The notes beneath the pieces were generated by a model that saw only the letters and a program-made list of their open reading frames with translations, was not told the DNA's origin and did not search any database. From Bugula neritina (taxonomy: Eukaryota; Animalia; Bryozoa): 64,000 bases of DNA. Location of the stretch: contig OZ037773.1 of NCBI GenBank assembly GCA_964035545.1, positions 3,501,751 to 3,565,750 on the forward strand, given 5' to 3'. The position numbers and the translations under genes are program-made. Positions 6,375 to 48,200 of the stretch are shown here, piece after piece (the first letter of the stretch is position 1; each line of letters opens with the position of its first letter).

Positions 6375-18935
<12,561 letters not shown>

Positions 18936-18956: not shown

Positions 18957-19535
18957 GGATTTACAGCCTTCGCCAATATCCTAGTGATAGCCGGTGCGTA
19001 TATCTTTTGTGCGTTACATGAGAATGGTATTTTAACCCTTCCCAAAATCATTACATAAATAAACCCCGATAATAAAATTACGCGCAGATTGCAGGGAGAA
19101 CACAATCCTGAACTTAACCAGTAAAATTAACACACACGATGAGTGAAAATAATTTGGTTGGCAATAATAAATGGCGCACGCAAGCACACATGCACATCAC
19201 GTACACAATCAACTTTACAAAAGCTAGAATAGAATAAAATGCTGTGTCTACAATACTGCAACGTCTAGTTGTCCTTGCTTACACTTATTATAAATCATTC
19301 CATGTTGAGATGTTCGCCAGAGTCCAGTTTGATAGTGATTCGTCAGCAGCTTTTGCTATCAAAAAAACTTTTTAGCAGGAGTATGAGCTGGCACCTAAAC
19401 CCTTTGGAATATATTGTTTGTCATGTGTACTTATGGTAGCATATATTAACTTAGCAAGATGATATGGTGCCTTCTTCAGCCTAGAACTATTTTGATGTGT
19501 GTATATATTTATAGATGTGGGCCATGGTACTCTGT

Positions 19536-19582
19536 TCTGTGCTGATGAGGGGACAAATCCCGAAACAGCTGCTGTACGCAGA
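19536..19582 (+). ncRNA. Type I hammerhead ribozyme (HHR-1)
   Basis: Stem I TCTGTG/CGCAGA; core CTGATGA (19542-19548); stem II GGGG-ACAAA-TCCC; GAAA (19562-19565); stem III ACAG-CTG-CTGT; cleavage triplet GTA ending at 19576. Confidence 0.85.
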
Positions 19583-19692
19583 TTGAGATATTATGCTCTC
19601 ATTTAATGAGGAGTTTGAAGTTGAAATTTACAAATTGGAAGATATCTTAAAGCAGAATCTTTCGGGCTAATTTACCCAAACGTTACTGCACC

Positions 19693-19695
<3 letters not shown>

Positions 19696-19761
<66 letters not shown>
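19696..19761. repeat. (TA)n microsatellite
   Basis: Seen directly. Confidence 0.97.
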
Positions 19762-19767
<6 letters not shown>

Positions 19768-19841
19768 AATTGTATCGTGAGATTTTTAAAAAACAGCGAT
19801 AAAAAAGTGCTCAAATTATTATGTGTATAATAATGAGCAAT

Positions 19842-20031
19842 TATATTATTGAGGAAAAGAGCAATTTAATTATATAGATGTTGTTTTATTGTACTACTAA
19901 TAGTTTCATGCCTCTTCGGCACTCCTCAGGCACAATATTGTGCCTGAGGAGTGCCGAAGAGGCATGAAACTATTAGTAGTACAATAAAACAACATCTATA
20001 TAATTAAATTGCTCTTTTCCTCAATAATATA
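19842..20031. repeat. Perfect 190-bp spacerless palindrome, probably a Penelope-like pLTR inverted fragment
   Basis: Centre between 19936 and 19937 (cacaat|attgtg); the 95-bp arms are exact reverse complements. Each arm carries a minimal hammerhead. Confidence 0.92.
19936..19986 (+). ncRNA. Minimal type I hammerhead ribozyme (HHR-2); mirror copy at 19887-19937 on the minus strand
   Basis: Stem I TATTGTGC/GTACAATA; core CTGAGGA (19944-19950); stem II GTGCC-GAAGA-GGCAT; GAAA; short stem III ACT-ATT-AGT; GTA cleavage triplet ending at 19978. Confidence 0.78.
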
Positions 20032-21090
20032 TATATATATTATATATTTATTTATATATATATACAATACTATTATTATAAATTCGGAAATCTATTCATC
20101 TAGAGTTATTATATCTAAAATTTGTAAAATTCACAGTTTTCAAGTCATAATCATCCATTTTACTAATCCTTACTTTTTACATCATCTAGCTTTTACTGAG
20201 ACCAGCTCCATTCAAAATTATTAAATTACACATATAAGTATTGTAATGAAAATTACTTCCTTATGCATGGGACAGCAGCAATAACTTTTATAACTGGCCA
20301 CTAGAGCCAATAAGAGAATGGATACGACAAGCAGCAAGTATATAATATAACTAAAGAAACTTTGTGCAATCAAGAAATGTATATATTATGTATTTAATAC
20401 CACTCCACACAGCAATGCTACCAGCTACAGACCAAAACATCACCATTTACAAGAATATAAAGTATATATTATTCTTACATTTTAGCATCATGACCATAAA
20501 ATGTATACTATAATATTATTAATATCAACAAGTCATAGCCCAATGACAAATTTTGCAATAAAATAGAAACAAATATATATTACAGGAAAATAACTGCCTG
20601 CCCCAAAACTGCATAAGAAAGTGTACACAAAGATTTACTAATTATTATAATTATATTATGACAAGTAGAAACTTTTCAAATAAAATTAAGCTGTAAAAAT
20701 TATGAAGATAGTCAGACGCATTCCAAAGAAAGATATTAAACAAACCATGACTCTTCCTAAAACCAATATTTATAATGCAAGGCAGAATACCCCATTGTGA
20801 TAATATGTTAATAAACTAAATAGGTATATAATATAAATACTCGTCTAAATCTTGCAAATAAATGATATAAAATTTTTGTAAAATAAACCGAATCTATTTA
20901 CAGAGTGAGCTAGCTTATACAGGTGATATTTATACAAAATCATTCTCTTTTAAATAAATAAAATAAAAAAATGTTGCAGGCATAATTATATATGATATAT
21001 TAAATTTTGCAAGTAGTGTTGACTGGTATAAAACAATAAATTAAGATAATCTATATGCGCACTAGATACTTTATACCAAGATGGCCGACC

Positions 21091-24000
21091 TCAGTGGCCT
21101 GTGCTCACAGGATTCGATTCATTCGATTTGATAGTTACTAATGACTGTTGGTCTGTGCTAAGAGTTCCATTACTGAGTGTAGAACTGAGGCTAAGATTTG
21201 AGTTTGTGGATTTCCCTGTAGCCTGTTGCTGGATAGAGCTATCACATCTTTCTATACACTCCTCAAGTATTGTCTGTAACAGCGTTATCAAGTTCTCTAA
21301 ACCAATCAGATAGCCGTCTTCGTGATTTCCCCTTTGCCATGGAATGTTATGAGTAATAGAGATTCCTTCTTTTAAAGGAGTTGTCTTCCCAAAGTCTATC
21401 ATCCACACACCAGCTTTCACTCCGTCGTGTATAAAGAGAAGAGAACTTCCAATTATCTGTAACACAACAGTAATAGAGTCAATACGGGTGCAGTATTGGA
21501 GATATAGGGAAGAGCCTGTGTTCCAAGGAGAAATTTGGCTAGAGAAGTTATGTTCCCATTAGAATTTTAGTTTGAATCTCAAACCCAAATTGATAAGAAA
21601 AAATCGAAAAGATTAAGTTATTAAAATTTCCCTGCTCCTACGCCTAAATGAAAATGTAAAACTTGACAAGAAAATTTGAATTAAAAAATATTTTGGTTAT
21701 GTCTATAATTACAGCCAACAAAATGCTAAAAACAGGTTCTCTAAACAAGGGTGGAGTTTTTAAAATCTGCCACATATTTGAGATCTAAACAGTTTAGCTA
21801 TTTTGAGATTACAACATGTTTGGTAGTACCTCATGGCTGGCGAAGAATGGCGAGACTTCCAGAGTGGTTCGGAGTTGTCTTAGCCTGTGCAGGCACTGCT
21901 TCACTATGTGTATGTTGTTGGACAGAAAACCCGAGATTATTGTCTTTATAGTTAACTTGTCTTTACTAGTCTTGAAGTTAATACACGACTTGCCGTCGGA
22001 ACACTAAAACATATGACATCATCACATTTGACTGTCTAGTATAATCCAACACCTACATGTGTTTGTGAATGTACAAGCTAAGGTGAGTTATTCTACAAAC
22101 CAAAACTTCTAGCTTATGCTAAAGCACAGTTTGGGCAGAGTAGGCAACGAAGAGTGGGAAAATTAGTAATGGACATGGTATGAGTATGGATTGCTATTGA
22201 GAAGTGGTGGAACTATCTACACCCCCCCCCCCCCCCGTAACCATAACACACTTCTTTGTGACCACAATATACCCTTGTGCGACCCCATCATATTCCCATG
22301 TCACCATAATACACCCCTGTGTGACTACATCACACCCCTGCTAAACCATAGCACCTCCTACCTTGATGCCCTCGATACGGAAGCCCATAGTTGATGTAGA
22401 ACTAATGTCTTCCCTCCACTGCATGTACCTCGGTTTGCTTACTGCTCCCACCTTGTGTTCCGCCTCAGTTGGTTCAGATGGATCTATTTTCACCATTTTC
22501 TCATACATATCCTGTGGAACACGCAAACTCTCAAGTTATATAAAATGAAGTTTAGAAAAAAAGAGTAAAAGCTTCAGAAAGGCTGGCCACATGCATGTGT
22601 TCCTGAAATTAACAACTTATGTAGATTTATCAAGGAAATCCTGGAGTATTCCTTTTTACATGATATCGTGTTTGCAATGACCATTTAGTATAGCAACTGC
22701 TTTGTTTGCTGCCTAGCTTAAGGAGATTACAACTCCAAATAATATGGGGTATTGTCAGACAGCTCTAGGCATACTTAGGTTATTTATTATAATGGATGGA
22801 TTTAGAAAATAAAAAATTAGTTGGCAAAACTTATAGCATTAAACTGGGTTAAACATGAATACTTAAAATTAGTATGTGGCGCAAAAATACAGCATAATAT
22901 TATAAATACACAAAGCATTGAGTTTGACGTTGTTTGAACAATAAAGTCACTTTTAGCATATGAAATCAATTGAGCAATCTTCACCTATAAAATGAGATTA
23001 TGCATTAGCTTACAGGTGCTATTCATTGTAGATTAGAAGGGTACAAGAGATTTACAATGATTGATGACTATTAATTATTGTCATGAGTACAATCTACTAT
23101 TTGCGTCCTTTGCCTTTTCACAATTCTCCAATCAATAGCAGTTGATACTTGCAGCATTGAAATGAATGCTAAAATCTCATTGACTGAGCGCCTGCCACTG
23201 CATTGAGGAGGAGTGAAATAATTGTAAAAGTGTAACTGTAGAAAATAACTACAGAAGGTAGTTGCAGAAGATCACTGAAGAAGTGTAACAGCAGAGGAGG
23301 GAGTACTAGAGAGTGACTGCTAGACACTGAGAGTGGGATTAGTGCAGTTGAAGGTAAGGTAATGAATATTTCAACTCACTAACTTACAGAATACTCTAAG
23401 TAATTGACAGTATATAAACTCACTAACTGAGAGTACATTATATACCAATTAATAGACAGTATATAAAGGAGAGAGTTCAACATTGATTCCATTTTAATTT
23501 ATTACATTTTGCTCAGATCATGGAAACTTGTCATAAAAATCTAATATTTATTTCAAACTAAAACAATTTTTGAAAAGCTAAAATGATTTCAGTCAAACAT
23601 TACCCTTTAAAACCTTAGTCAGCCAAATCTGTGGGTACAAAACAGACTATGCAGTGCTACAATCTTTTCTCCAAGTATGAAAAATACATTAAATGGTATA
23701 AAATTGACAAAAAATATAGAATTTATAGCTTAATAAATACAACTAATAAATTAACAAAATGCACTATGCCAGCTGCTTGACAGGTGTGAAGAAATAAATA
23801 AATTTACTTTTGGCTCCTGCAGCTACTTAATTCCCAGGTACTACATGGGTCATTAAAATAATTTCTTGGTCATTGAATAAGGCCAGAGAAATGATTGACC
23901 ACTGGAGAAGTCACCTAGCTCTGTCAGTGTGACACGCCCCCTAAAACCTCCATATTGTGTGTTTAAAGTACTACTGAGAAGTGCTAATAGCCTTCTTTAA

Positions 24001-27000
24001 TTTGACTGTGTTCTATACAACAGTTTATTCGTGTACCACCAAGTAGTACAACTAGTGTAGAGCACTTATGAATAGTATGCTGTATCAAATAGATTTAGAG
24101 TAAAATATTTCAGCAACTATTCCACTAATTTCATTTATGACAAATATTTAATACTGGCATCTCATTTATGAATTTGTAGAAGAAATGAGACATCGAACTC
24201 TAGTAGCAGCAGGTCTCTATTAGAATCGGAAAAGAGCCACAAGTCAGCATTTAGGCTGCCGTTGGTGGGCCAGATAGTAGCTTCACCACCTCATGAATGG
24301 CGCTGGACACCAGGAGCTGAGTGATGGTGAACGCTCAGAGCTAACGCCGTTAGTACTACCACACTCTAGTATTAAGAGAGCTCCATTTATAGAAGAACAT
24401 TCTAGACGTAAAAGAGCCCCATCTATAGAAGAACATTCTAGAAGTAGCAGAGTCCCATCTATAGAAGAACATTCTAAAAGTAGCAGAGTCCCATCTATAG
24501 AAGACTCTAGTAGTAAAAGAGCCCCATCTAAACCACACTCTAGAAGCAAAAGAGTCCCATCTATAGAAGAACATTCTAGTATTAAAAGAGCTCCATCTAT
24601 AGAAAAACACTCTAGAAGTAAAAGAGTCGCATCTATAGAAGAACATTCTAGAAGTAAAAGAGTCCCATCTATAGAAGAACATTCTAAAAGTAGCAGAGTC
24701 CCTTCTATAGAAGAACATTCTAAAAGTAGCAGAGTCCCTTCTATAGAAGAACATTCTAGAAGTAAAAGAGTCGCATCTATAGAAGAACATTCTAGAAGTA
24801 AAAGAGTCGCATCTATAGAAGAACATTCTAGAAGTAAAAGAGTCGCATCTATAGAAGAACATTCTAGAAGTAAAAGAATCCCATCTATACCACTCTCTAC
24901 TAGTGATAAAGCTCCATCTATACCACTCTCTACTAGTGATAAAGCTCCATCTATACCACTCTCTACTAGTGATAAAGCTCCATCTATAGAACATTCTAGT
25001 AGTAATAGAACACCATCTATACCACACTCTGAAAACCAGCAACACTTTAGCAACACTAGAACTCCACTTGCCATCCATCTACCTCCAATTGAGAACAACG
25101 CAAGCACTCCCAATCCCGAAAAGAGAGACTGTAACAATCTGCACACACCGTATCCCGGCACAGCGTGTTGTAATGAAGCATTTCTTACCACCCCAACTGG
25201 TACAGGGCAATCATTTCTTGGTCCAAAAGATGGAGTAGAGAATACTCTGACGGTATTACAACCTGATCAAGGCTCAGCACACAGATCTGATCAGAACAGG
25301 TTAGTTCTACCATGTACTGAGCCAATCAAGTGAGTTCTACCATGTACTGAGCCAATCAAGTGAGTTCTACCATCTATTGAGCCAATCAAATGGGTGAGGC
25401 TAACTTGAGAACTCAATAGGTCAGACTTGACCATCTATACTACGCTGCTAATATGACATTTATATCAGTGAAATAGTATAAAAGTGTTGATGAAAATAGC
25501 TCGCCATCCACGGGAGGCTTTTGCTAATGTCATGTGTTTTTATATCACACGATTATTTTTATATCTTATACTCTGCGTTCAGTTATGAGAGTAGCGGCCA
25601 GCAACTAAAAGATGGAATGAGGGAGCAGATTAAGTGCATTGGAAAGGTGCCGATTGGAGAGAAGTGCTTTGCCCTGCTCATGTTCTTCTTAGTCTTTGGG
25701 ACGCTGTGTACTGCCCTGGGGACAACTTGCCTTATACCGGAAGTAAGTGCAGTCAGCTCTTGTCCACATCGCTGCTAATATTTTTGGAAGAAGACTCACG
25801 CAAGTTTATGGTCATTATCCCTGTGAGAAACCCTTGAGGGAAGGGTTTTTGTTAAATTGGGCTAAGGACTTATTCAGATGAAGCACAGGAGTAATTATGA
25901 CTGGATGCTCTTCCTAACATCACCAATGGCCTTTGTCAGGGTTCGAACCCATCACTTCGTGCCCATGAAGCAAACGCTCTAACCCCTAGACCACGAGTGC
26001 TCCCTTTTTTAAAAGCATTTAAAAAAATAATTTCTATTACCTGATGATGACTAACAGCATATATCATGAAACATGCTGATGTTTCATGATATATGTGACC
26101 AGTCGCGACAAAACCGGGGATGTGGCGGCGTTTATTAAGTGTAGTAAATGAAGGTTTAATTTGGAAATACTTAAATTTGAAATTAATTTCCAATTTTTAG
26201 ATTTTAGACTTTTCTAGTGCAAAAGAATCTAAGGATTTCAAAAATCATACTTTCGTAAGCATTTGATGATTCCTTCAGCTCTAAAATTGCATTTAAAGTT
26301 GGTAACTAAGGCTTTCAATTTTTTAAATGATGAAAAAATTGCGAAGTTATCGATTAAAGAAAGAAGACAATTTTAGTCACTTTCATAGCATGAGATCTTG
26401 CAAATTTATTTTTTATCAAATGAATTTAGCTTACACCTCTTTCTTCGTACTGTCAGAAGCATCATATTTAAAATCGAAGGCTAGTTTTAGTTTTTCATCG
26501 TGTTCCATCCAAAGTTAGCTTTTAAGTTACTGAGCTGTTTTGCCCTTTGGTGATAAATGCTGAACTTAATCTTTATCTTTAGCGTTCAAGCTTGAAAACC
26601 ACAACAATACAGGTAATTATACTCAAAACAATCATTTACGCTACTAACTTAGAATTGTTGCCAGGATTATTTGTAGTTATCAATTTAATAATATTTATAC
26701 TATCACTAGGAGTAGGAGTCTGTCTTAGTCTATTCTATTCTATACTACTACTAGTAACTATTTAAATGACTTTCACTATGACTCACAGTTTGAGGTACGG
26801 TTACTCATAATGATAATTATAATGACTATTATTCATGATTTACTGATACTGGTATTTGGTAGTAAAACCAAATGTAACTCAATAATAATACTAATAGTAA
26901 TAGTATAACTATAACTATAAGTATAAGTAATTAATAATTATAAATTCACTATTACTATTAGTATTACTATTACTTAGTACTTAATAGTATTACTGTATTA

Positions 27001-30000
27001 TTATTTGGGTCTGACTCTGAGTTTTGCCTTTGCTATTAAAACTTGATACTCATACTGATAGTATTACATTTATTGATTTATTCTATAGTTGATATTTCAA
27101 TTTACATTAGACTTACTCTTACTCTTAGTAACTTTTAGCCTCTGTCTTAGATTTTGTCAATACAGTTACTGATTACTATTACTATTAGTATTAACATTAG
27201 GCCTACTAGTACTAGTCAAACTACCTGTTCCTTTTGTGATTTTTAAATTAGCTCAAAGTTTGATTTAAAATATAATGATAAAATCTTTATCACATTATCA
27301 TTATGCAGGCTTACAGTTAGTGTTACTATCAAAACTCAATTGATAATCATATTTATATTCATAAAAGCATCACCTATAACCAAATTGAAATGATAAATGT
27401 GACTAAATGTAAATGATTATAATGATGAAATATTAATGCGAGTTCATGATGATTCTATAGTTGACTGACTTAGTTTTTCAGTAAGTTACTTTTAGTCTTA
27501 TTTAGTGAGTAGTAACACTAACTGAATGCATAAATAGTTTAAACTTTTTAATTTTATTATAAGATGAGCAAAAATTTATTCATATTTTAAAGTAATTCAT
27601 TGAATTCAAATTGATTTTATAGTAAATGTCTCTAATAGATTCAGTTGCACTTAGCTAGCTTTTTTACTCAATTAAATGCCTGAGTGGTTAATAGTTATCT
27701 AAAGACATTGCTTCAAAATTGCCAATTGCAGATATGCTAGATATTCAAGTGCATAATGTGTAATTTTACTGATAATACTATGTTAATATAGAATAATCCG
27801 ATATTCTGTACATTTTAGAAAGTGCACTTGTGAGGGCATTAGAGTGAAGACTCATACCTACACAACTCTACTACCTATCAATCTAATACTTCTAATGTAG
27901 ACACTCCGAATTTTGGCTTGCAAGGTTATGGCTTCTGCTTATTTCATTCATAAAAAGGTTTGCAGTCTTTTAATGATGTGCTTGAAAATTATCAAGCATT
28001 TTTTTAATTTAAATTGTTCTGTTTAATTCAATAAATTTAAACGTTGATGAAATGCAGGATCACAATTAACTACTGCCATAATAGTACTACAAGAGTGTTC
28101 AGCCAACTAAATTTTTATAATATAACTGGGTATAATTTCTAATCAAGCTACCGTTTCCTTTTGTTATTTAAAGAAAGTCAACATTGTACTTTCAGCTCTG
28201 GAATAGACAATAAGTGGGTAGATTGGCAGGATGGATGTCAAGTAGCAGCATCTATAATTGCTAGAAAATCAACTGATGATAGTGATGAAGCTTTTGCCAC
28301 ATACATGATGTTATGTGTCCATACTCCATAAACTCATATTATTAAGACTAAAGAAGTAGAAAGATGAAAAGTGCCTTTTTGCAAAAACCGTAGAAGCTAC
28401 CTAATTTTCTTTTCTTGATAAGAGTTAATTCAAGCATAATGGTTGTATCCAGGCTGGATTTTTTACTGCATTTAATTGGTTTTTTAAAATAATGTATTTG
28501 ATGTTTTAAATGTGAATATTAATGCCTAATAAAACTCAAAAGTTCAAATAGCTGATTTTATGTTTATAATATTTTCAACATCTCAGCCAAATCAATTGCT
28601 AAATTTAGTTGCTGTTAGAGATTATAAAGATATTTATGAATGAACCTCGCATGATCTCATAATAGTCAAATAATTTTCTCATAAGTGTTCTACTCATAAA
28701 GCAATAATTATGAAACAGCACAGCTCAATAGCTGCAGTTTGATATATTACAGAATATATTAGAGGAAAGGGAGGTATTCAATGTATAAGAGGAAGCAGCT
28801 GCCATTTCGTTTTATATGATTTCCTGCTGACTTGGATGCCTAATTTAAATATCTCAACACACAAACTTGCTGAAACATCTTCTTCTTTGCTGAAATTGTT
28901 AAACCTTTTAACCATTAAACAAAGTAAAAAGCAAATTGACAAATAAATTAGACAAAAAGTTTGGCGGCCATATTTGACCTAATTTTATGTTGAGGCAGCA
29001 TGAAATTTAGTTTAACAGAAAGCCCAAACTTTCACAATTATTTTGATACCAAATTTGTCACCATTCCTGTTATACAAAGACCCGTTGCTAAGGCTTGTAA
29101 ATTGTAAACAAATAATTCTCAACTTATTCTAGAGTTGCCAACTTTAAACGCGATTTTTTCGAAACAGTAATTTAGAAATTTTAAAAACGTTAAGGTTTTT
29201 AAATACTGATATCTCGAGTTCTACTCATGCTAGAGACTTCAAATAAAGTGCAAAATGTTCAAAAAAGTCTGCTCTATCACTCCATAGTAATAACTAGGTA
29301 TCCAACATTTTATATGCATCCCTTGTTTTGTGGTGCCAGGTCACATATGATGAAGTAGATCATTAAATAGCAGAAATAGTCTTACATTTACAAAAAATTA
29401 TACTCATTAAGTGCTAAATTTATCAACATGCAGATTCTAAAAATAGCCTTTTTTCTCCCTTGAGAGGTATTCCTCAACACCAGAGTGCTATTTACACATA
29501 CACTATTTGCTAAATCCTTCCACTGTGCTGACATTTGTGAACTGATTAAACAGGTAGGCTACGCCACGGACTCAAGCTTTTGCCAAACTGTGGGAGGCCT
29601 GATCACTGCCCTAACACTGGTGTGTGGAGGAGGGGTCCTCATACTACTTGCAGTAGCCTCCTGCATCGTAATAAGTGAGTGCAGTGGACGGGAACTGCAC
29701 GGAGGCAAGTGCTACATCAACTGCCATATCTTCGAAGATCTTGTCTAGTAAAACCGTTGTGAACTGGCAAAGACAATCCTAGCACCACAAATTTTGAACC
29801 TCATGTCAGCAAACAACAGCAATCTTACTCAGACATATTGCCTATGCATATATAACTCGCGTACGATAGCTCTCACAGCAGTATCTGCGTACTCAATAAG
29901 AGAAAATATATTGGCAGTCTGCTTGAAATCAATATGGAGTCAATAGAGACCCTGTTGTAAACTGTTTAGCAATACTATAAGAAGTTGTAGATACATACTA

Positions 30001-33000
30001 TGTACTCTTACTTAGTTCAGCTAATCATGGCCTATACTACACTATGTCTGATATATTGCAATGTATGGTAGATGCAGCGGTTGTATTATTTATACTTGAA
30101 GTGTCATTTAATCTGATTTTGTGTCTTGCTGTGATTATCTATGCTATGTTGAAGGAACATGTCTTTGGCTTGTGATTAATATACTGATGACCTTTTACAT
30201 ACATTGGCAGCATTTTTGAAGGACCATAACCCCTCATTCCCACTTACTGTACGTAGGCCGTAACAGCAAACATCAGCCACTTTTACAAATGTCTGAGCTT
30301 CCTGTACGGCGTTGCGGTACGTTAGGATCAAGCACTGCTTGATTAAAAAATGTTGCTGCGGACTTCTATTAGACAGAAAAAGTTTTGCATCAACTCATTG
30401 GATAAAAATGTCCACTGAGATAACATAGATCGTACATAATAGCGGACTTCGAAAACTTTAGACAGGACACATTAAAAATGGCTGATATTTTACGTTATGG
30501 CCTACAGTACGGTAAGTGTGAATGAAGGGTAAATATGTTACTAAATTTATATATCATGAGGCAGCAGTGCTTGCTTGATCTCTAGACCATGGCTGCTATT
30601 TGGAAAGACAGGTTACACCAAATTAGATGGGGGGGGGGGCATATTTTGTGTAATAAGATGATTGATTTGAACAACAGACAAAGTGAACTCACCTTACGAG
30701 GGGCAGGGCACTTCTCTGCCTTACACAACTCCTCCTCTAGGTACGTCCGAACACCTATCTTGCAGTCCATTACGGAAGGAGAGTTGAACCCGTGTAATAA
30801 ATTCTCTAATTCTCCGTATTCTGCATATCTAGTTAAGGATGAAATAACCAACACGCCAGTTGTCACAACATACTACCATTACTACTGGAAGATAGAAGGA
30901 GGGTGATAGTGTGTATATATAATATAAATTTGCTCACACGTATAAAAATTAGTTATAATTGCTAATATTATCAACAATTATAAATAATTTTTATACGTGT
31001 GAGCAAAATTAATGCTTTACGCTTTGTGTTTAGTTGTAAAACATAAAAACTTGCAGAATGCAATGCTCTACACTCTACAGACTAGTAATAGTTCAACAGA
31101 TGTTAACAAAGCACTTATTTTGGAGTTATTTTCTCTAGAATAGGATTTGACAGGAGAAGGCAAATTTTAAAACTAGAGAACCAGATGCATATTTTGTAAA
31201 TGGGATTCATCAAGTTGGTTAAAGGAAGTCAAGTTTATTGATTGAATATATATTTTCTTGTTATTAATTCTAGACCAATTATTAAACTTTGTTAAAGCTT
31301 TTGATGGTTTTTGTAGAAAATAGTAAATTATTCCATAGATTATGATACAGAGAGGGGGGGGGTCCAGCCCACAGGGAAAGTAGGGGGAGGGTGTCCAGCC
31401 CACAGGGAGAGTGGGGGGTTTAGCCCACAGGGAGAGTGGGGGTGCAGTCAACAGGGAGAGTGGGGGTACAGCATTCACTAAGCTGAGAATATTTTGGCCG
31501 AGATGAAAGAACATGCAATGTGTGGTCACACCCTATAGAAGTAACATTATCAGCACATGTACATGGTCAATGTGATAAGTATGTCTGAGTAGAGAGAGCA
31601 CTGACCCAAACGCTGCCTACAAACGCTGCCTACAAACGCTGCTCTGAATACTGATGTTTGGCCCCTACTTCATCTGGAACACGTGAATGAGTGAACATGA
31701 GAAATGCATGCACAAGTCAAGGAATTTATGGAATGGAGCCAAAATGATTATCTTTAGACATTGGAAAATAGCCTGGTATACTGATAGTGACGTGAGTGAC
31801 CATTACGCAGGCTTGCATAGACTAAAAGCATTCTCCAACCAAACATAGAACACACTAAATATAACTTAAGCTTGAGTGAAGCAGAGATCAAAGGAAACCC
31901 ATTTATATACAACAATTTAGTCAACTGTGAAAGCACATGGAATTGCGACAAACTTTAGAAACAAATAATGAGGGAATGTTGACACTGACACTTGGCAGAA
32001 GTAATTTATGTATTAAGTTAGCGATTTAGTCACGTCATGTGACGCAACTCCTATATTTTACACACCTGTTTGAAACTAATTTACTAAACTTCTTTACATT
32101 TTTTAAATTCAAATTCAGTAATGAATTTTATTGCTTGTAACCCTGTTAAAGTTAATCTCATTGTATTCAAATCAGACAGGAGAAGACAACCAAAGCAGTA
32201 ACAACATCTCTTGGTAAAGCTAGCAATAACACTATTGACAAATGTTCCTACAGGACTGAGTCACTAAGGATTAGCAATGCCGCATCTGCTAAGCCTATAA
32301 AATTACTTGCAGACAGAGAAGTACATATTTTGAAGAGTAACTATGACTCTGCATTAAAATTAGACGTATTAATTTTTTTAAACCTACTCCACCCAGCTGA
32401 AATAATTTAACATACTCGGTAAATTCACAAAATAGACCAATATCTGAGCGATAAGAAAAGGATACGATTGCCGCCCTTTGTGGTCATGCCATGGTACTTG
32501 GGCACAAAGGCTCTGAGGGGGTCATTGAACAGCTTGGTGAAGGCAGCGTGCTCCAGCTGACAGAACCTCTTCAGCACCAGAGACTCTTCTGCGCACTGCT
32601 CAAAGCTGCCTGAAACATTGTACAGGATAGATAACTCCCACACTCAACGTAGGCGCAAGTCACCACTTGCGACACAAAGATACTTTGAATATATGACTTG
32701 AAGCTGTGAACTTTTCTGGAGAGAAACAAAGTTACCATAAATTGGAAGTTTTGCTGAGGATTCATGAGGGCTGGACATGTTAATCTAAATCCAAATAAAG
32801 GAAAGTAAGAAAATGAGAAGTATTCATATTTCATTTGAATCTAAAGGGGAGGGGGGGGGGTGGGAGGTCTTTGAACAAGTCTAACGGACCCAAAGCCAAA
32901 CTTTACTTAGGTATTGTTGATTTCAGCATAACAAATGTCACCAAGAAAAACAAAATTTAATGCCACCTGTAATGTGTGATATATACATAGTATATAATAT

Positions 33001-40990: not shown

Positions 40991-42203
40991 GCATCATATT
41001 TGAGATACAACTTGGTTACTTAATACTACCATTCTTTACTAAACATACTTTGATTAAAACTTATATATATCAATGCAGTTATCAACTGAACATGGAAACA
41101 CACATTATAAAGCATACTGAGAAAAAAGATAACATATTGAGATAGAAGAAGATAAGTTTGGCCTGTCAAAGCATCAAATAATCTCAACAAACACAGTGAC
41201 AGTATTACATTATTATATGTACCTGCATTATATCATCATGTTACACGTAGGCTACATGAAATACAGAGCTTGTTAAGACCATAGTTTACTTTCTAAACCA
41301 ATTGGTTGAAATTATTGATTAAGAGAATATTAATTAAAATCAAGCATAATAAGGTGGCTAATTATGCAATAAAAACAAACAATTCATTTTCAATAGAATA
41401 ATCCAGATATTTCATTCATTCAACACGTTTAGGCCCACATGCTTCAAATGTATTTTACTGGCAGATATGTTTCCCAAATCCCAGTTTTCTATAGCTTTAA
41501 ACCAATGATTATAATTGTGTATTAGTGAAAATTAGAAAGTAAGATTTGATACAGTTATAAAATAATGTATAACTCTTGCAGCAAAGCAAAGCAAAATTAT
41601 GAATGACCAATCAGTTTTCCCTTCCACTGTTGACTGACAGACTCTTCCATATAAAAATCATAAAAATAATATGAAATTTAAAATATTAAAACTTAAAATT
41701 AAAAATATAAAATTATTTATTTGAGCTTCAATTGTCAGTTTGAATAACTAAGGAGTTATTCTCTCATTAATGTATGAGGAGATAATTCTAAGTGATCAAT
41801 TGTAATATAATTACATAAGTTCTAGATGACAGAAATAGCATCGGCACACTTTATGCAGGTAATGCCTGGAGATGTAACTAATTGAAAAATTAATTCCACC
41901 CACACAAAACCTCTTCCACAAATTGCCAACTCATCTAGACTCTGAGCCAGACGGCAATAGCAAGGTGAAACAGTGAAATGATGAGGATATATATTAGTCA
42001 ATGTCTGTTGGAATCAATTTCATTAGGTCAGCAGGCTAAGTTTTTATCAGCAAACCTATGGCTAAATTTCCCAATGTTGGGTGAAAACTTAAAATATCTG
42101 AGAAATATCTATAGGGTAAAATGAATACAAAGGAACAAAATATAAACTAAATGTTCTTTTAATATTACTTGGCACATATAGGAGTAAAAAATCCTTGCAA
42201 GTG

Positions 42204-42241
<38 letters not shown>

Positions 42242-45200
42242 GCTACTGCTACTGCTACTGCTACTGCTACTACTACTACTACTACCGCTACTACTGCTAC
42301 TACTGCTACTACTACTTTTAAGATCAGTACCATTATCACTGCTGCTATTACTTTATTGCAACTGTTACTACTGCCAGTACAACTACTGCAACGGTTACTA
42401 TCACAATTTATGGCTAATGTGACTAACTTACCAGGGGGTCTTTTATGGCCTCCAGGTAGGGGGTGCTGGGGGTGTGCAGGGCTGAGAGAACTGAGTCTAC
42501 ACTCACACAATCCGACTGCAGTTGTGGTTGCTGTGTGCTGTACAAGTTGAATAACGACTCGACATCATTGTCAATAGGAGCGGAGACTGGGTGCTTCGAC
42601 TCCTTCAAACTATAAATAGAAAAGTCAACCGCTACATACAGGATCACACAACTCCAACTTCTTGTTAATGTGATAAGGTTCCTGAAACTTTCCAGACTTC
42701 TCATGAACCCGATGACCAGTTTACGGTCAGTTCTACTGCCAGGGCAAGATGGGCAGCTAGTCCAGGAAGCTATTCCGCCGAGATAAAAGTTGGTCACATG
42801 GACCTCTTTGATCTCTTCTGTTAATTTATATTTATAATATAGAACTAGTCAAAGTCATATTAATTATTTATTCAAATGTGTATCATGATTTTATATATAA
42901 TCTATTGATCTTGAGAAGATGTAGAGAAAGCCGAAACAAGGAAGTCTGATCAGTAGCACAGCAGTCTGTCTCTTCTAGCAATATCACTAACTCCTGCACT
43001 AGTACTATCACTGTGTTTAACGGCAGTGGGACTGGTCAAACAGTTACTAGTTACAGTTACTAGTTCAACTAGTAACTGTTTGACTAGTAACTGTGACTAG
43101 GTAACTAGTACTATCACTGTTATTAACGACAGTGGGACTAGTCAAACAGTTCGGCGAATCTGACTAGACTTGAATGATGGATCATTAGAAATAACTTCTA
43201 CGATTAGCTTACTTTATGTACTCCAACAATAAGAGAGCTCTAGTAGTAACGTAAGCTTGACTAGTAAAGTAGCTGAAGAGTTAACTTCAACAAGTACATG
43301 AAGCAGAATCTGCAAGGGGCCGAGAGAGAGGGGGAGAGAGGGAGGTAGGAGAGAGGGAGGGGGAGAGAGAGAGGGAGGGGGAGAGAGAGGGAGGGAGAGG
43401 CTGCAAGGGGCTGAGAGAGAGGGGGGAGAGAGAGGGGGGAGAGAGAGAGGGGGGAGAGAGAGAGGGAGAGAGAGAGAGAGGGAGAGAGAGAGGGGGAGAG
43501 AGAGAGAGGGAGAGAGAGAGGGGGGAGAGAGAGAGGGCTGAGAGAGAGAGGGGGGAGAGAGAGAGGCTGAGAGAGGGGGAGAGAGGGGGAGAGAGGGGGA
43601 GAGAGAGAGATAGGGAGGGAGAGAGGGGGGAGAGAGGGGGAGAGAGGGGGAGATCTCAACTCACTTGCATACACCTGTTGGCACGCAGCATGCGCATGTA
43701 AGGTCTATATAGCTACCTACACGTCTTTTAACGCCCACACAACAACAACAACCAACTCGAAACACCTCACATTTAATGATACCTTTATGCTAATTTTCTC
43801 ACTTGCCAAAAAGTGACATGATATTATAAGCACATTAACATAATCCCAGGGGAGAAAGTGCAGGGATCTGCCATAGGGCATGCCTAAGGAGCAGCTTTGT
43901 GTCTCTTAGGTTAGGAAGGCATCACTTTCTGAAGTAAGTCAGCCAATCAATTCAAGTAAGTAAGCCAATCAAATCAGCTGCACACCAAACTGTGGCAGCA
44001 AGAAGGCAGCACGCAGTGGATCTCTCTACACATTTCAGCCACAGAATGAATGCACACCATGTAATAACAAATTAATTAGGGATAGCAGCTCACACACCAA
44101 AGAGGTAAAAATAGTAGGCTACCCTCAAAAACCAATACCACCTCAATAAATTACAATATACAATACAGTAACAAACTCCTAGTAGAGTAAGTTCTACTAG
44201 TTCATTGCTATCAGTGTTTGTATTAAATAATGAAAATTATCATGCTCAACTTCCACCAGATAAGATAGTGTACTATTAATATCTTGTAATGAAAAATGTA
44301 AACATATACAAGATTACAATATTCTGTTTAAACATAAGAAATATCATGACAGCACAGTGTCAAGTAGTCAAAGAGACAGCTTATATTCAGCTAACATGTT
44401 TAGCTCATGTTAGAGGAAACGGGAATTGGGCCATCTAAAATTGAAACAGAAAGAACTACAGGCGGTAAATGCACATTTCTTTTCTGAGGAACAAGGTTGA
44501 TGCATGTGACCCAAGAATTTCTATGAACTTTTAGCTATCAGCTGTACACCATACCCCCCCCCCCCCCCCCCTACCTAAACCAGCTCAAGTTGAAACTTGT
44601 CCGGCAACATTTACCTGGCACTTTTCCAAAAGCTAAATGTAAAAATGTGATCATAAACTCTACAAAACCCTTCTTTAAAATTATTGTGCCAAATTCTTAT
44701 TTTTACAACACAAGCATGATCTACAGCTCCCAGGCGCCCCATTGTCCAGCTGTAGTACTACATCTATTACTATCTGAGCCCTAAAACTTCCAACATCAAA
44801 TAAGTTTAGCCCTAGAATCTTACCTTACATCAACTTTAAGAGCTACCAAATGCTTCTCACTTAGCCGTTCCCGCAATGAGCGCTTCTTTCGAGGTTTAGA
44901 TGAAATGCTGTTAGTAGTTGCTTCCTCCTTGACATCAGAGACACTATCTGCAGCAGTCTTTGGAGAACTGAAACAGCAGCAGAAACAGCACTTGAGCGGC
45001 TTCATGTCACTTCTAAGTTTGGATCTAAAGCTAAGGCAGCAAAGACAATGCAGCGAGTTGTAGTAACGGACTAGACTTGCTCTAAAATCCCGTGTGTGTC
45101 AACTTATGCCTACTACACTTCTGAACACCACTAATGTATGCAGTGATAAACTTAGACTCAGTCCCTTGTATTTTCATGCCAATTATAGGAACTCCTCCAA

Positions 45201-48200
45201 CCTTAGGGTACCAGCATAGCCTGCTAGTAAACTACCAACTGAAACCCTTATATAAGTGTAATGAGATGAATGAGTTGACAGTTGAACGCAACTAGGATAA
45301 TTTATAGTTCTTGGCACATAATTATCTTATGTTCAAACAGTAAGAAAAACTGAGTTATTTATGTGATTATGGACAGGATTGGACAGGATTGGTGGAGATG
45401 GAATCACAGAGCTGAAAGGCCATTGGTCAGAATAAAGATATAAGCAATTGATCACAACAGCATTACCACGCAAGCAGGCTACATAAATTACAAAAACTAA
45501 GCCAATGGCTAACAGCAAAAATCAAGACCAACTGTGGCAGGCTAATAACCAAAGTAGTAGCCAAAAGCAAGCTGTATTGTCTAACAAATAACAGTTAACC
45601 ACAAATTTTTAATATTTTATTAAATTAGCAACTTTTTTTCAAGAATTTTCATAATTTACTTTGAAAATATTGAATTGTTTCTGTCGAAATAAAATAATAT
45701 GTTAATTGATGTAACAAAATTGGGTTTAGCGAGAGAAAATATTTGAACAAGTATTTCATAATCAAATAAGGTCTGAACCATGTATCAAGCAGAATCTAAT
45801 TGGATTAGAAGTTGCACTATAGTTTGACAGTTACTATGTTTAGTTATTTCCGGAGGGCTCCATGAGTAATCATTTGTCAAACTGTGTGTTGCATTATATT
45901 TAAATATTGCGAAAATCAAATTATTTGAATCTGTATAGTTGTGGCCGTCAAATGTGAAACTTTACCAGCTGAATAAAAGAAAGTTGCAAAGTTGTCTTCT
46001 CCTTACTACAATCCAAAAATTGCCTAAGCAACTTGTACCAAGCGGACCACATCTGCTACATTCATATGTGAACATACAGCAATAATCATACCCAAACAAC
46101 TTACCATGTGGTATTACAGTAACAGATTTAGATCAGTCAGAATTCGACTTTCCACAAGAACTAGTACACGCAAATGACTCACCGTGCTGTGTCAGAGGTT
46201 GAACCGGCCAGCGGTGACACGGGACTTGCAGAAGACATGCTAGTGGGAGGTGCAGACGTTGGAAGGAAGGCGCTATCAGATGAACTAGCATTGTGTTCCG
46301 CTGCCAGGAAGCCGTAACCGTCCGCATGATCTGTCTGAACATGATACGGATAGTGTATGTTGGAGAAATAGCCGTCTAGACTAGACAGAGAGTCTGCAGA
46401 CGGGCGGCTGTATACCCGACTCGGGTAGGATGAGCTTGAGCTGTCACTCAGTTGTCTGCTAACTACATGTAATACTGAGGGTGGGGGGCTAGAGATCAAG
46501 GAATGTTCACAAGTCTGACTGGTTGGAGAGGACAACTCCTCGGTGGTGTCTAAATTCCCATCAGAACTGGAGGTCCGTTCTAAAGGAGGAGTGTCTATTG
46601 CATGCTCCGCCTCCACTGCTGGCTCCACCCACTCTTCGTGGTCTAGGCTAGCCAGCTGCCACCTATAAATCTCCGCCCCAGTTTCCTCGACGATAGCTTC
46701 AGTTTCGTTTGGCTCCAGAGGAGGTGGAAATTGCAGAGTGGTAGAGGCAGGCCAAACCTTTACTGTGGGAGTCATCATCCCATCATCAGCAGATTCGAAG
46801 AGATTTGTGGGGGTTGTGCTCTCAATCAACTGAATTGGGGGGATAGTAGGGGTGGTGCTAATATCCCTGGATCCGCTCTCTGTGGTGTCAAGTGAGGCAT
46901 CTTCACTGTGTGTCCTGATTAGAGAGCTTGACTGATCAGAGTCAGCATAGAGTCGTCCTCCTCCGCCGTAATCGCTGCCGGCTGGGCTCACGTTACCAGA
47001 CGAATGCAATGCTATGTCGGAGCCATTTCCACTGTCACACCTGCAGCACATAAAACAACTCTAATTCTGAAGATGACCATGATGTATATCTATATCTATA
47101 TAAATATATCTATATAGATATATCTATACATAGCTCTACTAGATACATAGATATGCCTAGCTCTACTAGTTCTATATATATGTCTATATCTAGCTCTACT
47201 AGATATATAAATATGTCTATACGGTAGCTCTACTAGTTCTATAGATATGTCTATATCTAGCTCTACTAGTTCTATAGATATGTCTATATCTAGCTCTACT
47301 AGTTCTATAGATATGTCTGTACTATATTTACCTATAATACTATTACTAGGTCTAAATTAGTACCTGAGCCTAGAAGTGGGCAGTTGAAGGGTGTCTAGTG
47401 GTGGATGATTAGTGCCGGCAGTGGTGGATACAGGAGCTGTGGAGACAGATAGGGGTAGAATGTGGCTGTCGTATGTCGTATAACACACACAGGTATTCAT
47501 GTTGACGTCATCGGTATTATCAGTCAGCTCTACAATGTACGTGTGTTCACTTGAAGATAAGAGATGAAACGTGTGTTCTCTAAGTAAACAATGCTTAGTG
47601 TGCTAGAGAATGGGTGCTTGTACAGTAGCCGGAGCACTCACAGGTGTCTACAGCAAGGTATGGCCATTGTCAGTGAAACAATAGTACCAGTGTCTGTGCA
47701 GGATGATTCAGGTGGCTAACACAGGGGAGTCTGATTAACTTAACATCATTAGTGAGAGTCAGAAATAAATGTGCACTCAAAAGGCATTTATCAACTTTTA
47801 ATTGTCAGTGAGTTGGATATTTAGAGGAAAGACAATTCCGCACAAGGTAGTAAACTGATGGTTGTGAATAGTAGACTATGTCAACCAGAGAGTTAAAGGT
47901 GAAACCTGAAGCTAGAAAATGAGACACCTTTAGCAGGTGATGTTACATAGGTCACACCAACTAACCAAATGATATGTGTGCTTTAGTCTAAACAATAGCT
48001 CAGATGTTACAAGTTACTGTATACCCACTTCCAATTATTTATTATAAAACTATGTTTAAGCATACAGGTGGAAGGATCCAGCACCCCCCCCCCCAGCAAA
48101 ACTCTGGGCATTGGCTGCAGTTTATTATAAACAAGATGTAAACCTGTTGAATTCCATCTGCAAAACCATGTGTTTAGCCGAGGAGATGTTTATTTACTGC

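Follow-up and report, generated by a model that had tools for sequence, protein, structure and literature searches.

Here we describe a gene of the bryozoan Bugula neritina, which lies on the plus strand of a 64,000-nucleotide (nt) stretch of contig OZ037773.1 (the whole stretch is called the window below and positions are counted from its first letter) and is placed entirely within one intron of an inositol trisphosphate (IP3) 3-kinase gene encoded on the opposite strand. We put the probability that it is a real protein-coding gene, belonging to a small taxon-restricted orphan family nested antisense in the IP3 3-kinase intron, with a membrane hairpin and a short tail as its core, at about 0.77. 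This reading is carried by a spliced contig crossing both predicted exon junctions and by the counterparts of the membrane exons in relatives, which keep the protein in spite of saturated synonymous sites. The N-terminal part of the product bears a long array of repeats with kinase consensus motifs, from which a preliminary description of this stretch had derived the function of the protein. That array is examined here as a separate matter.

Gene structure and transcript evidence

Three exons of 1007, 160 and 195 nt join in phase into a single plus-strand open reading frame (ORF) of 453 amino acids (aa) and a stop codon (Table 1). The frame of exon 1 is open from the stop codon at 24278-24280 up to the GTTAGT donor at 25300. 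The donor sites read CAG/GTTAGT at 25299/25300 and GAA/GTAAGT at 25742/25743, and the acceptor sites ...GCGTTCAG/T at 25582/25583 and ...TTAAACAG/G at 29553/29554; both acceptors have a terminal CAG and the first of them is preceded by a pyrimidine-rich stretch.

Table 1. Features of the nested gene, its host gene and the intronic repeats (positions in the window)
Feature	Position	Strand	Details
Exon 1	24293..25299	+	Coding from ATG 24293; 335 residues + 2 nt
In-frame coding minisatellite	24362..25027	+	~19 units of 12 or 11 aa; core HS-R-S-K-R-V-[PA]-S-I-E-E, variant units at the 3' side
Intron 1	25300..25582	+	283 nt, phase 2, GT..AG; skipped in the X8 contig
Tandem triplication, 30-nt unit	25300..25389	+	Begins exactly at the exon 1 donor; three GT donors 30 nt apart
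Exon 2	25583..25742	+	Basic pre-membrane segment, then predicted helix 1 (residues 365-387, 25668-25736)
Intron 2	25743..29553	+	3811 nt, phase 0, GTAAGT..CAG, interrupts the inter-helix loop; skipped in the X8 contig
Interspersed repeat, SINE-like	25800..26006		~207 bp, within intron 2, not in the gene product
Exon 3	29554..29748	+	Rest of the loop with the conserved Cys, predicted helix 2 (residues 403-429, 29593-29673), tail, TAG 29746-29748
Cys/His-rich tail	29674..29745	+	24 residues; most conserved element
Host IP3 3-kinase exon	21274..21462	-	IPK profile 124-190; PF03770 E 4.5e-13 and 6.7e-11 (two scans)
Host IP3 3-kinase exon	22359..22442	-	IPK profile 32-59; weak Pfam match, E 0.1
Host IP3 3-kinase exon	30714..30812	-	PF03770, IPK profile 3-33; ~970 nt beyond the nested stop

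Contigs of four public runs were aligned to the region 24000-29990 for transcript and variant evidence. A 401-nt contig (record 26) of run X8, which comes from the same organism as the DNA run holding the window, maps to 25181-25296, 25580-25742 and 29554-29675 and in this way crosses both predicted junctions. The boundary 25296/25580 is equivalent to 25299/25583, because the same 3-nt CAG closes both exon 1 and intron 1. As the GT..AG borders are legible on the plus strand only, the transcript is antisense to the host gene. Exon 2 and exon 3 are both single-copy in the genome and no intronless copy was found there, so that a retrocopy is an unlikely source of the X8 contig. One contig of another run (X2) spans exon 2 together with intron sequence and is either unspliced RNA or DNA.

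Among the sites in the coding exons which were listed as variable from the other runs, six of seven are synonymous: all three in exon 1 (24340, 24346 and 24352) and three of four in exon 2, the remaining one being a change of L to P outside helix 1.

The donor of exon 1 opens a short tandem triplication, which Tandem Repeats Finder reports at 25303-25389 (period 30, 2.9 copies, 96% matches). Use of the second donor, at 25330, would stay in frame and add 10 aa, while the third, at 25360, would meet an in-frame TGA at 25331; use is seen, in the X8 contig, for the first of the three only.

Orthologues and selection

A word search with exon 3 gave two short Logan products (P0001 and P0002), whose contigs belong to two further species, L004-L006 to one and L007 to another. 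With L012-L014 and L015, obtained by scanning metagenomes, the number of species rises to five, that of the window included. L004-L006 and L007 carry counterparts of exons 2 and 3, and L012-L014 and L015 extend the set of exon 3. Both introns are located at the same codon positions and in the same phases in L004 and L007 as in the window, intron 2 being 156 nt long in L004, ~805 nt in L007 and 3811 nt here. The L004 orthologue starts with a Met placed a few codons after a stop.

Exon 2 from P-I-G-E-K-C onward shows 63-70% identity in L004 and L007, and exon 3 shows 59-76% identity across the four other species. The proportion of synonymous differences (pS) between species amounts to 0.82-0.95, which means saturation, versus a proportion of non-synonymous differences (pN) of 0.24-0.31. 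In the tail 10-22 of 72 nt differ between species, but no more than 1-2 of 24 aa, and among the five species 21 of these 24 residues never vary. Over a 10-kb region, conservation between species is limited to exon 2, exon 3 and the host exon. The conserved core consists of a basic C-[IV]-G-[KR]...P-I-G-E-K-C segment, the helix pair with its loop, and the tail. Judging from these comparisons, the conserved and selected part is the C-terminal ~100 residues; selection preserves the hairpin and the tail, and the N-terminal region is not conserved.

At their very end, three of the four orthologues read E-D-L-V-E followed by a stop; in the window (29743-29751) E-D-L-V is followed directly by TAG, the last Glu codon being missing. 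In L015 (1167-1641) the equivalent of exon 3 is split by an extra intron within helix 2, so that members of the family have gained or lost an intron here. A match to helix 1 at G000:C4:2524374 (E 0.05) was rejected as a chance one, with no tail exon nearby.

Membrane hairpin and tail

There is no hydrophobic stretch in residues 1-40 of the protein, the largest 9-residue Kyte-Doolittle mean being 0.92, and the start of the L004 protein is likewise not hydrophobic. Two hydrophobic segments of 23 and 27 residues are present near the C-terminus (Table 1), and the helix encoded by exon 2 exceeds 1.6 in 19-residue Kyte-Doolittle windows. They are connected by a 15-residue loop, with C385 two residues before it and C399 inside. 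Across species the loop has 12-15 residues, a net charge of 0 to -2 and one invariant Cys. A basic R-R-R-(R)-P stands directly before helix 1 in both the L004 and L007 orthologues, and helix 2 is rich in Gly pairs. With no signal peptide, positive charge just ahead of helix 1 and a loop that is acidic or neutral, the protein most likely forms a hairpin with both termini inside, whose arm and tail would be cytoplasmic.

The tail follows the pattern E-C-S-G-[RQ]-E-L-H-G-G-K-C-[HY]... and closes in F-E-D-L-V; no C-x-x-C is found in the conserved region. This F-E-D-L agrees with the core of Atg8/LC3-interacting motifs, to which little weight is given here, the pattern being a short one. An AlphaFold model of exon 3, made with three sequences, reached a mean predicted local distance difference test score (pLDDT) of 52.7, with helix 2 predicted and the tail unstructured, and was too poor for a fold search.

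Family searches

In Pfam no match was obtained for what exons 2 and 3 encode in the window, in L004 and in L007 (E up to 1-10), the two halves having been scanned separately, at lower sensitivity. A sequence search of PDB gave no match, and in the ESM Atlas the best score, 0.75, pointed to a bacterial 'inner membrane protein' cluster and was below a useful level. From 1.84 billion representative proteins, an exhaustive profile search with exon 3 returned P0002 and P0003 only; the latter is spurious, a 774-aa tandem-repeat protein matching 23 positions many times over. Pfam matches of exon 1 to MIMI_R596-like_C and NDUFB10 were below the cut-offs, did not include any single stretch that passed, fell on the repeats and were discarded as low-complexity noise. 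With the non-repeat part of exon 1 a word search scored nothing and with exon 2 it gave no candidates, but the same tool missed the 99-aa L004 product, so these blanks mean little.

The structural observations of the preliminary description all hold after these analyses. Its three ORF fragments do join through canonical, phase-matched splice sites into 453 aa, and the junctions it gave are exactly those crossed by the X8 contig. It had stated that the protein has no signal peptide, and no hydrophobic start was found by hydropathy, no dedicated predictor having been used. The two hydrophobic helices with a short Cys-flanked loop and the Cys/His-rich tail are as it had reported, and no family can be recognised in the searches named above. 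It had proposed to look for the membrane exons in related genomes and to compare non-synonymous with synonymous change in exons 2 and 3; the exons have their counterparts there, and the pN and pS values quoted above argue for selection on the protein.

The repeat array

The product of exon 1 is a low-complexity N-terminal region rich in Ser, Glu, Pro and Arg (20.6% S, 9.9% E, 9.6% P and 9.0% R by composition), into which the minisatellite is built. Its 19 units, anchored on 'SI', occupy residues ~24-245 and are all 36 or 33 nt long; Tandem Repeats Finder places the array at 24361-24889 (period 36 nt, 14.9 copies, 86% matches). Counted over the whole protein, there are 15 R-x-x-S, 19 [RK]-x-x-S, 12 S-x-x-E and 8 R-x-[KR]-R motifs. 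R-x-x-S followed by a hydrophobic residue is a basophilic (CaMKII-type) kinase consensus and S-x-x-E an acidophilic (CK2-type) one.

Several units do not differ in DNA at all: those at residues 154, 166 and 178 (three in a row, 154-189), the pair at 130 and 142, and the pair at 201 and 212. Identity of neighbouring units at the DNA level points to a recent expansion. No close second copy of the array exists elsewhere in the genome, other matches being low-complexity sequences of 18-40% identity. The complete orthologous first exon of L004 (~146 residues) is rich in Ser, Thr, Asn and Pro, has no 12-residue repeats and shows no alignable similarity to exon 1; the 44 N-terminal residues on hand for L007 are also unrelated to exon 1 and free of repeats. 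Since it is absent from the first exon of L004, the array is not the conserved core of the protein, and it appears to be a young, lineage-specific in-frame minisatellite and not the defining feature of the family. The preliminary description was therefore right in its count of about 19 repeats of 11-12 aa with about 15 R-x-x-S, while its functional reading of them as a kinase-consensus array is unsupported as stated, given their young age and their absence from both L004 exon 1 and the 44 residues of L007.

Three of the six frames stay open inside the array, and two of these belong to the minus strand. The minus-strand ORFs at 24283-25191 (302 aa) and 24356-25078 (240 aa) have no support from conservation or splicing and are repeat artefacts. 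Because repeats open frames by themselves, the array alone is no evidence of coding; that evidence comes from the sequence outside the repeats, from the splice junctions and from the orthologues.

The host gene

The preliminary description had placed the gene antisense within an IP3 3-kinase gene, and minus-strand exons matching PF03770 indeed flank it on both sides. The IPK profile scores 50 bits at 21091-21465 and 34.3 bits at 30582-30866, with a curated cut-off of 22.2. The ORF around the short exon at 22359-22442 reads ...KPRYMQWRE...GFRIEGIK, and it is from motifs including K-P-R-Y-M-Q-W-R-E, compared with those of the ITPKA family, that we take the host to be of the IP3 3-kinase subtype. 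The nested gene (24293-29748) is situated wholly within the host intron between this exon and the one at 30714-30812.

L004-L006 and L013 also have a kinase exon on the opposite strand, 0.7-2.1 kb past the nested stop. The nested arrangement, found in three species, that of the window and two others, is therefore old. By default, however, nested genes remain with their hosts, and for this reason conserved nesting shows no functional coupling. Further away on the strand of the host there is a 290-aa Ser-rich ORF (46179-47051) with no Pfam match, which may either belong to the IP3 3-kinase gene as an N-terminal exon or form a gene of its own.

Alternative explanations

The array could be regarded as the very point of the protein, as a cytoplasmic CaMKII/CK2-type device for multisite phosphorylation mounted on the hairpin and tied to Ca2+/IP3 signalling through its locus. 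Its 15 R-x-x-S and 12 S-x-x-E motifs, assigned from established knowledge of kinase consensus sequences, are situated in a probably cytosolic region without a signal peptide, the frame is kept through all units of 36 or 33 nt, and two other species also keep the nesting within the kinase gene. We nevertheless regard this as unlikely, since the array is missing from the complete first exon of L004 and from the available part of L007, its DNA-identical neighbouring units mark it as young and without demonstrable selection, short Ser motifs of basic or acidic character are commonplace in disordered regions, and the nesting, which persists by default, gives no sign of coupling. The same repeats could also be taken as a lumenal precursor, from which furin-type cuts at R-S-K-R and a Golgi casein kinase acting at S-x-E would produce many short peptide copies. 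Such precursors are usually laid out as tandem peptide copies separated by dibasic sites, and the 8 R-x-[KR]-R, 12 K-R pairs and 14 S-x-E are regularly spaced. What makes a precursor very improbable is the lack of a signal peptide or hydrophobic start in both the window and L004, with no conserved upstream exon that could supply one found in the 10-kb region comparison. In addition, the basic R-R-R-(R)-P before helix 1 in both orthologues favours a cytosolic N-terminus, several units have K-S-S-R or S-D-K in place of the dibasic site, and the array is absent from the orthologues.

It might further be supposed that the locus yields a non-coding antisense transcript, or no transcript, and that the ORF arose from a tandem repeat and chance. 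The additional open frames in the array, including the two minus-strand ones of 302 and 240 aa, agree with such a view, as do the single contig available as RNA support and the absence of an annotated protein from the databases searched. We find it barely credible, because the protein of exons 2 and 3 is conserved in four other species despite the saturated synonymous sites, the positions and phases of the introns are conserved, and the probability of frames remaining open by chance, calculated from base composition, is ~1e-3 for the ~91 non-repeat codons of exon 1 and ~2e-4 for the 117 codons of exons 2 and 3. Several points have to be set against our own reading of a coding orphan gene with a hairpin and tail core. 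The RNA-type support is one contig of depth 6.67, and X8 is only guessed to be RNA; this contig differs from the window in ~4% of letters, which fits an origin from another allele or strain. Non-coding upstream exons may exist. The proposed topology is predicted from hydropathy and flank charge only, and the net charge of the tail itself is -2. A link to a very distant family may exist, the halves of the hairpin having been scanned separately. That the residues bind a metal, are palmitoylated or dock a partner is guessed from their pattern, and the model of exon 3 is of low confidence.

Proposed role and significance

Under the coding orphan reading, the protein would work through its hairpin and tail as a core, holding a fast-evolving disordered N-terminal arm at the membrane. 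At the cytosolic face, six conserved Cys would cluster with two or three His, and these residues could provide a metal site, sites of palmitoylation or a docking place for a partner. In this genome the arm would have been lengthened recently through slippage or unequal exchange of the 36-nt in-frame unit, and the lengthening would have given rise to ~15 copies of the basic-then-acidic motif R-x-x-S-I-E-E, which could be phosphorylated. A bolder proposal, and in our opinion a long shot, is that the invariant tail and the Cys before helix 1 form a new module, membrane-clamped and metal-binding or multiply palmitoylated and partner-recruiting, which carries a new array of ~15 phosphorylation sites read by Ca2+-dependent kinases and is co-regulated with the host by antisense transcription.

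The current understanding is not overturned by these results, as animal genomes commonly contain nested genes and also orphan membrane proteins. The nested gene is a real gene without any representative protein in the databases. Its most valuable lead is the invariant tail: 24 residues kept near-unchanged under synonymous saturation usually mark a precise binding or cofactor site, and the tail is a small, testable target. The array provides a clean natural example of a coding minisatellite building, in one lineage, a series of kinase consensus sites on an existing membrane anchor, possibly as a first step towards a new regulatory region. With the nesting in the IP3 3-kinase intron kept in three species, the locus also offers a simple case for the study of transcription interference between host and guest.

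Other elements of the window

The window is AT-rich (~36% G+C) and has a eukaryotic gene structure. The repeat in intron 2, which resembles a short interspersed nuclear element (SINE), had 3664 candidates in the genome at first look, and the copies that were scored are 86-92% identical; it accounts for the very high contig depth at 25800-26006 in all four runs. Scans of 19000-31000 for tRNA and against Rfam gave no matches at the gathering score, this repeat included.

An uninterrupted plus-strand ORF of 1316 aa at 14236-18186 contains, as judged by eye, a CCHC knuckle and reverse transcriptase and integrase-like stretches, and looks like the Gag-Pol polyprotein of a long terminal repeat (LTR) retrotransposon. 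On the minus strand, the exon at 9947-10300 codes for part of a serine/threonine protein phosphatase (Metallophos, E 5.6e-18) with motifs of the PP1-type catalytic subunit. Short-unit tandem or low-complexity tracts at 7768-8294, 8720-9286, 42109-42510 and 43261-43674 have long ORFs on both strands, which are artefacts of the kind seen in the array.

Comparison with known systems

Proteins of the CD225/dispanin group (IFITM, PRRT2, TRARG1/TUSC5 and SynDIG1; PF04505) have a long, disordered and fast-evolving cytosolic N-terminal region and a short C-terminal module of two hydrophobic segments, and in IFITMs the juxtamembrane cysteines are palmitoylated. The protein described here resembles them in its disordered N-terminal arm, two hydrophobic segments and juxtamembrane Cys, a likeness of use as a lead only. 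In CD225 proteins, however, the stretch between the segments has ~20-25 residues, is basic and conserved, and almost nothing comes after the second helix, whereas here the loop of 12-15 residues is acidic or neutral and helix 2 is followed by the conserved 24-residue tail; the PF04505 profile matched neither half in the three species.

LITAF/SIMPLE-like proteins (PF10601) have a membrane insertion with Cys and His to either side of it in the cytosol, and these hold a zinc ion which clamps the hairpin. Their metal ligands are arranged in two C-x-x-C knuckles around a single hydrophobic stretch of ~22 residues, which does not cross the membrane. In both cases Cys and His flank a hydrophobic membrane insertion, but the present protein has no C-x-x-C, possesses two predicted full-length helices of 23 and 27 residues and gives no match to PF10601. 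A two-helix C-terminal module of the Spec3/Stum type was compared by profile only, and Pfam gave no match to either half.

With regard to its origin, the array is comparable to coding minisatellites (variable number tandem repeat, VNTR, exons) in disordered regions, with which it shares a unit length that is a multiple of three, identical neighbours, a frame that is kept and restriction to one lineage; this comparison has no bearing on the conserved hairpin and tail. As for the locus, one full-text search, a weak negative, found no previous description of a gene that lies within an intron of an IP3 3-kinase gene. The arrangement itself is that of other intron-nested, opposite-strand genes of animals, with a whole gene contained in one intron of its host, read from the other strand and kept in relatives.

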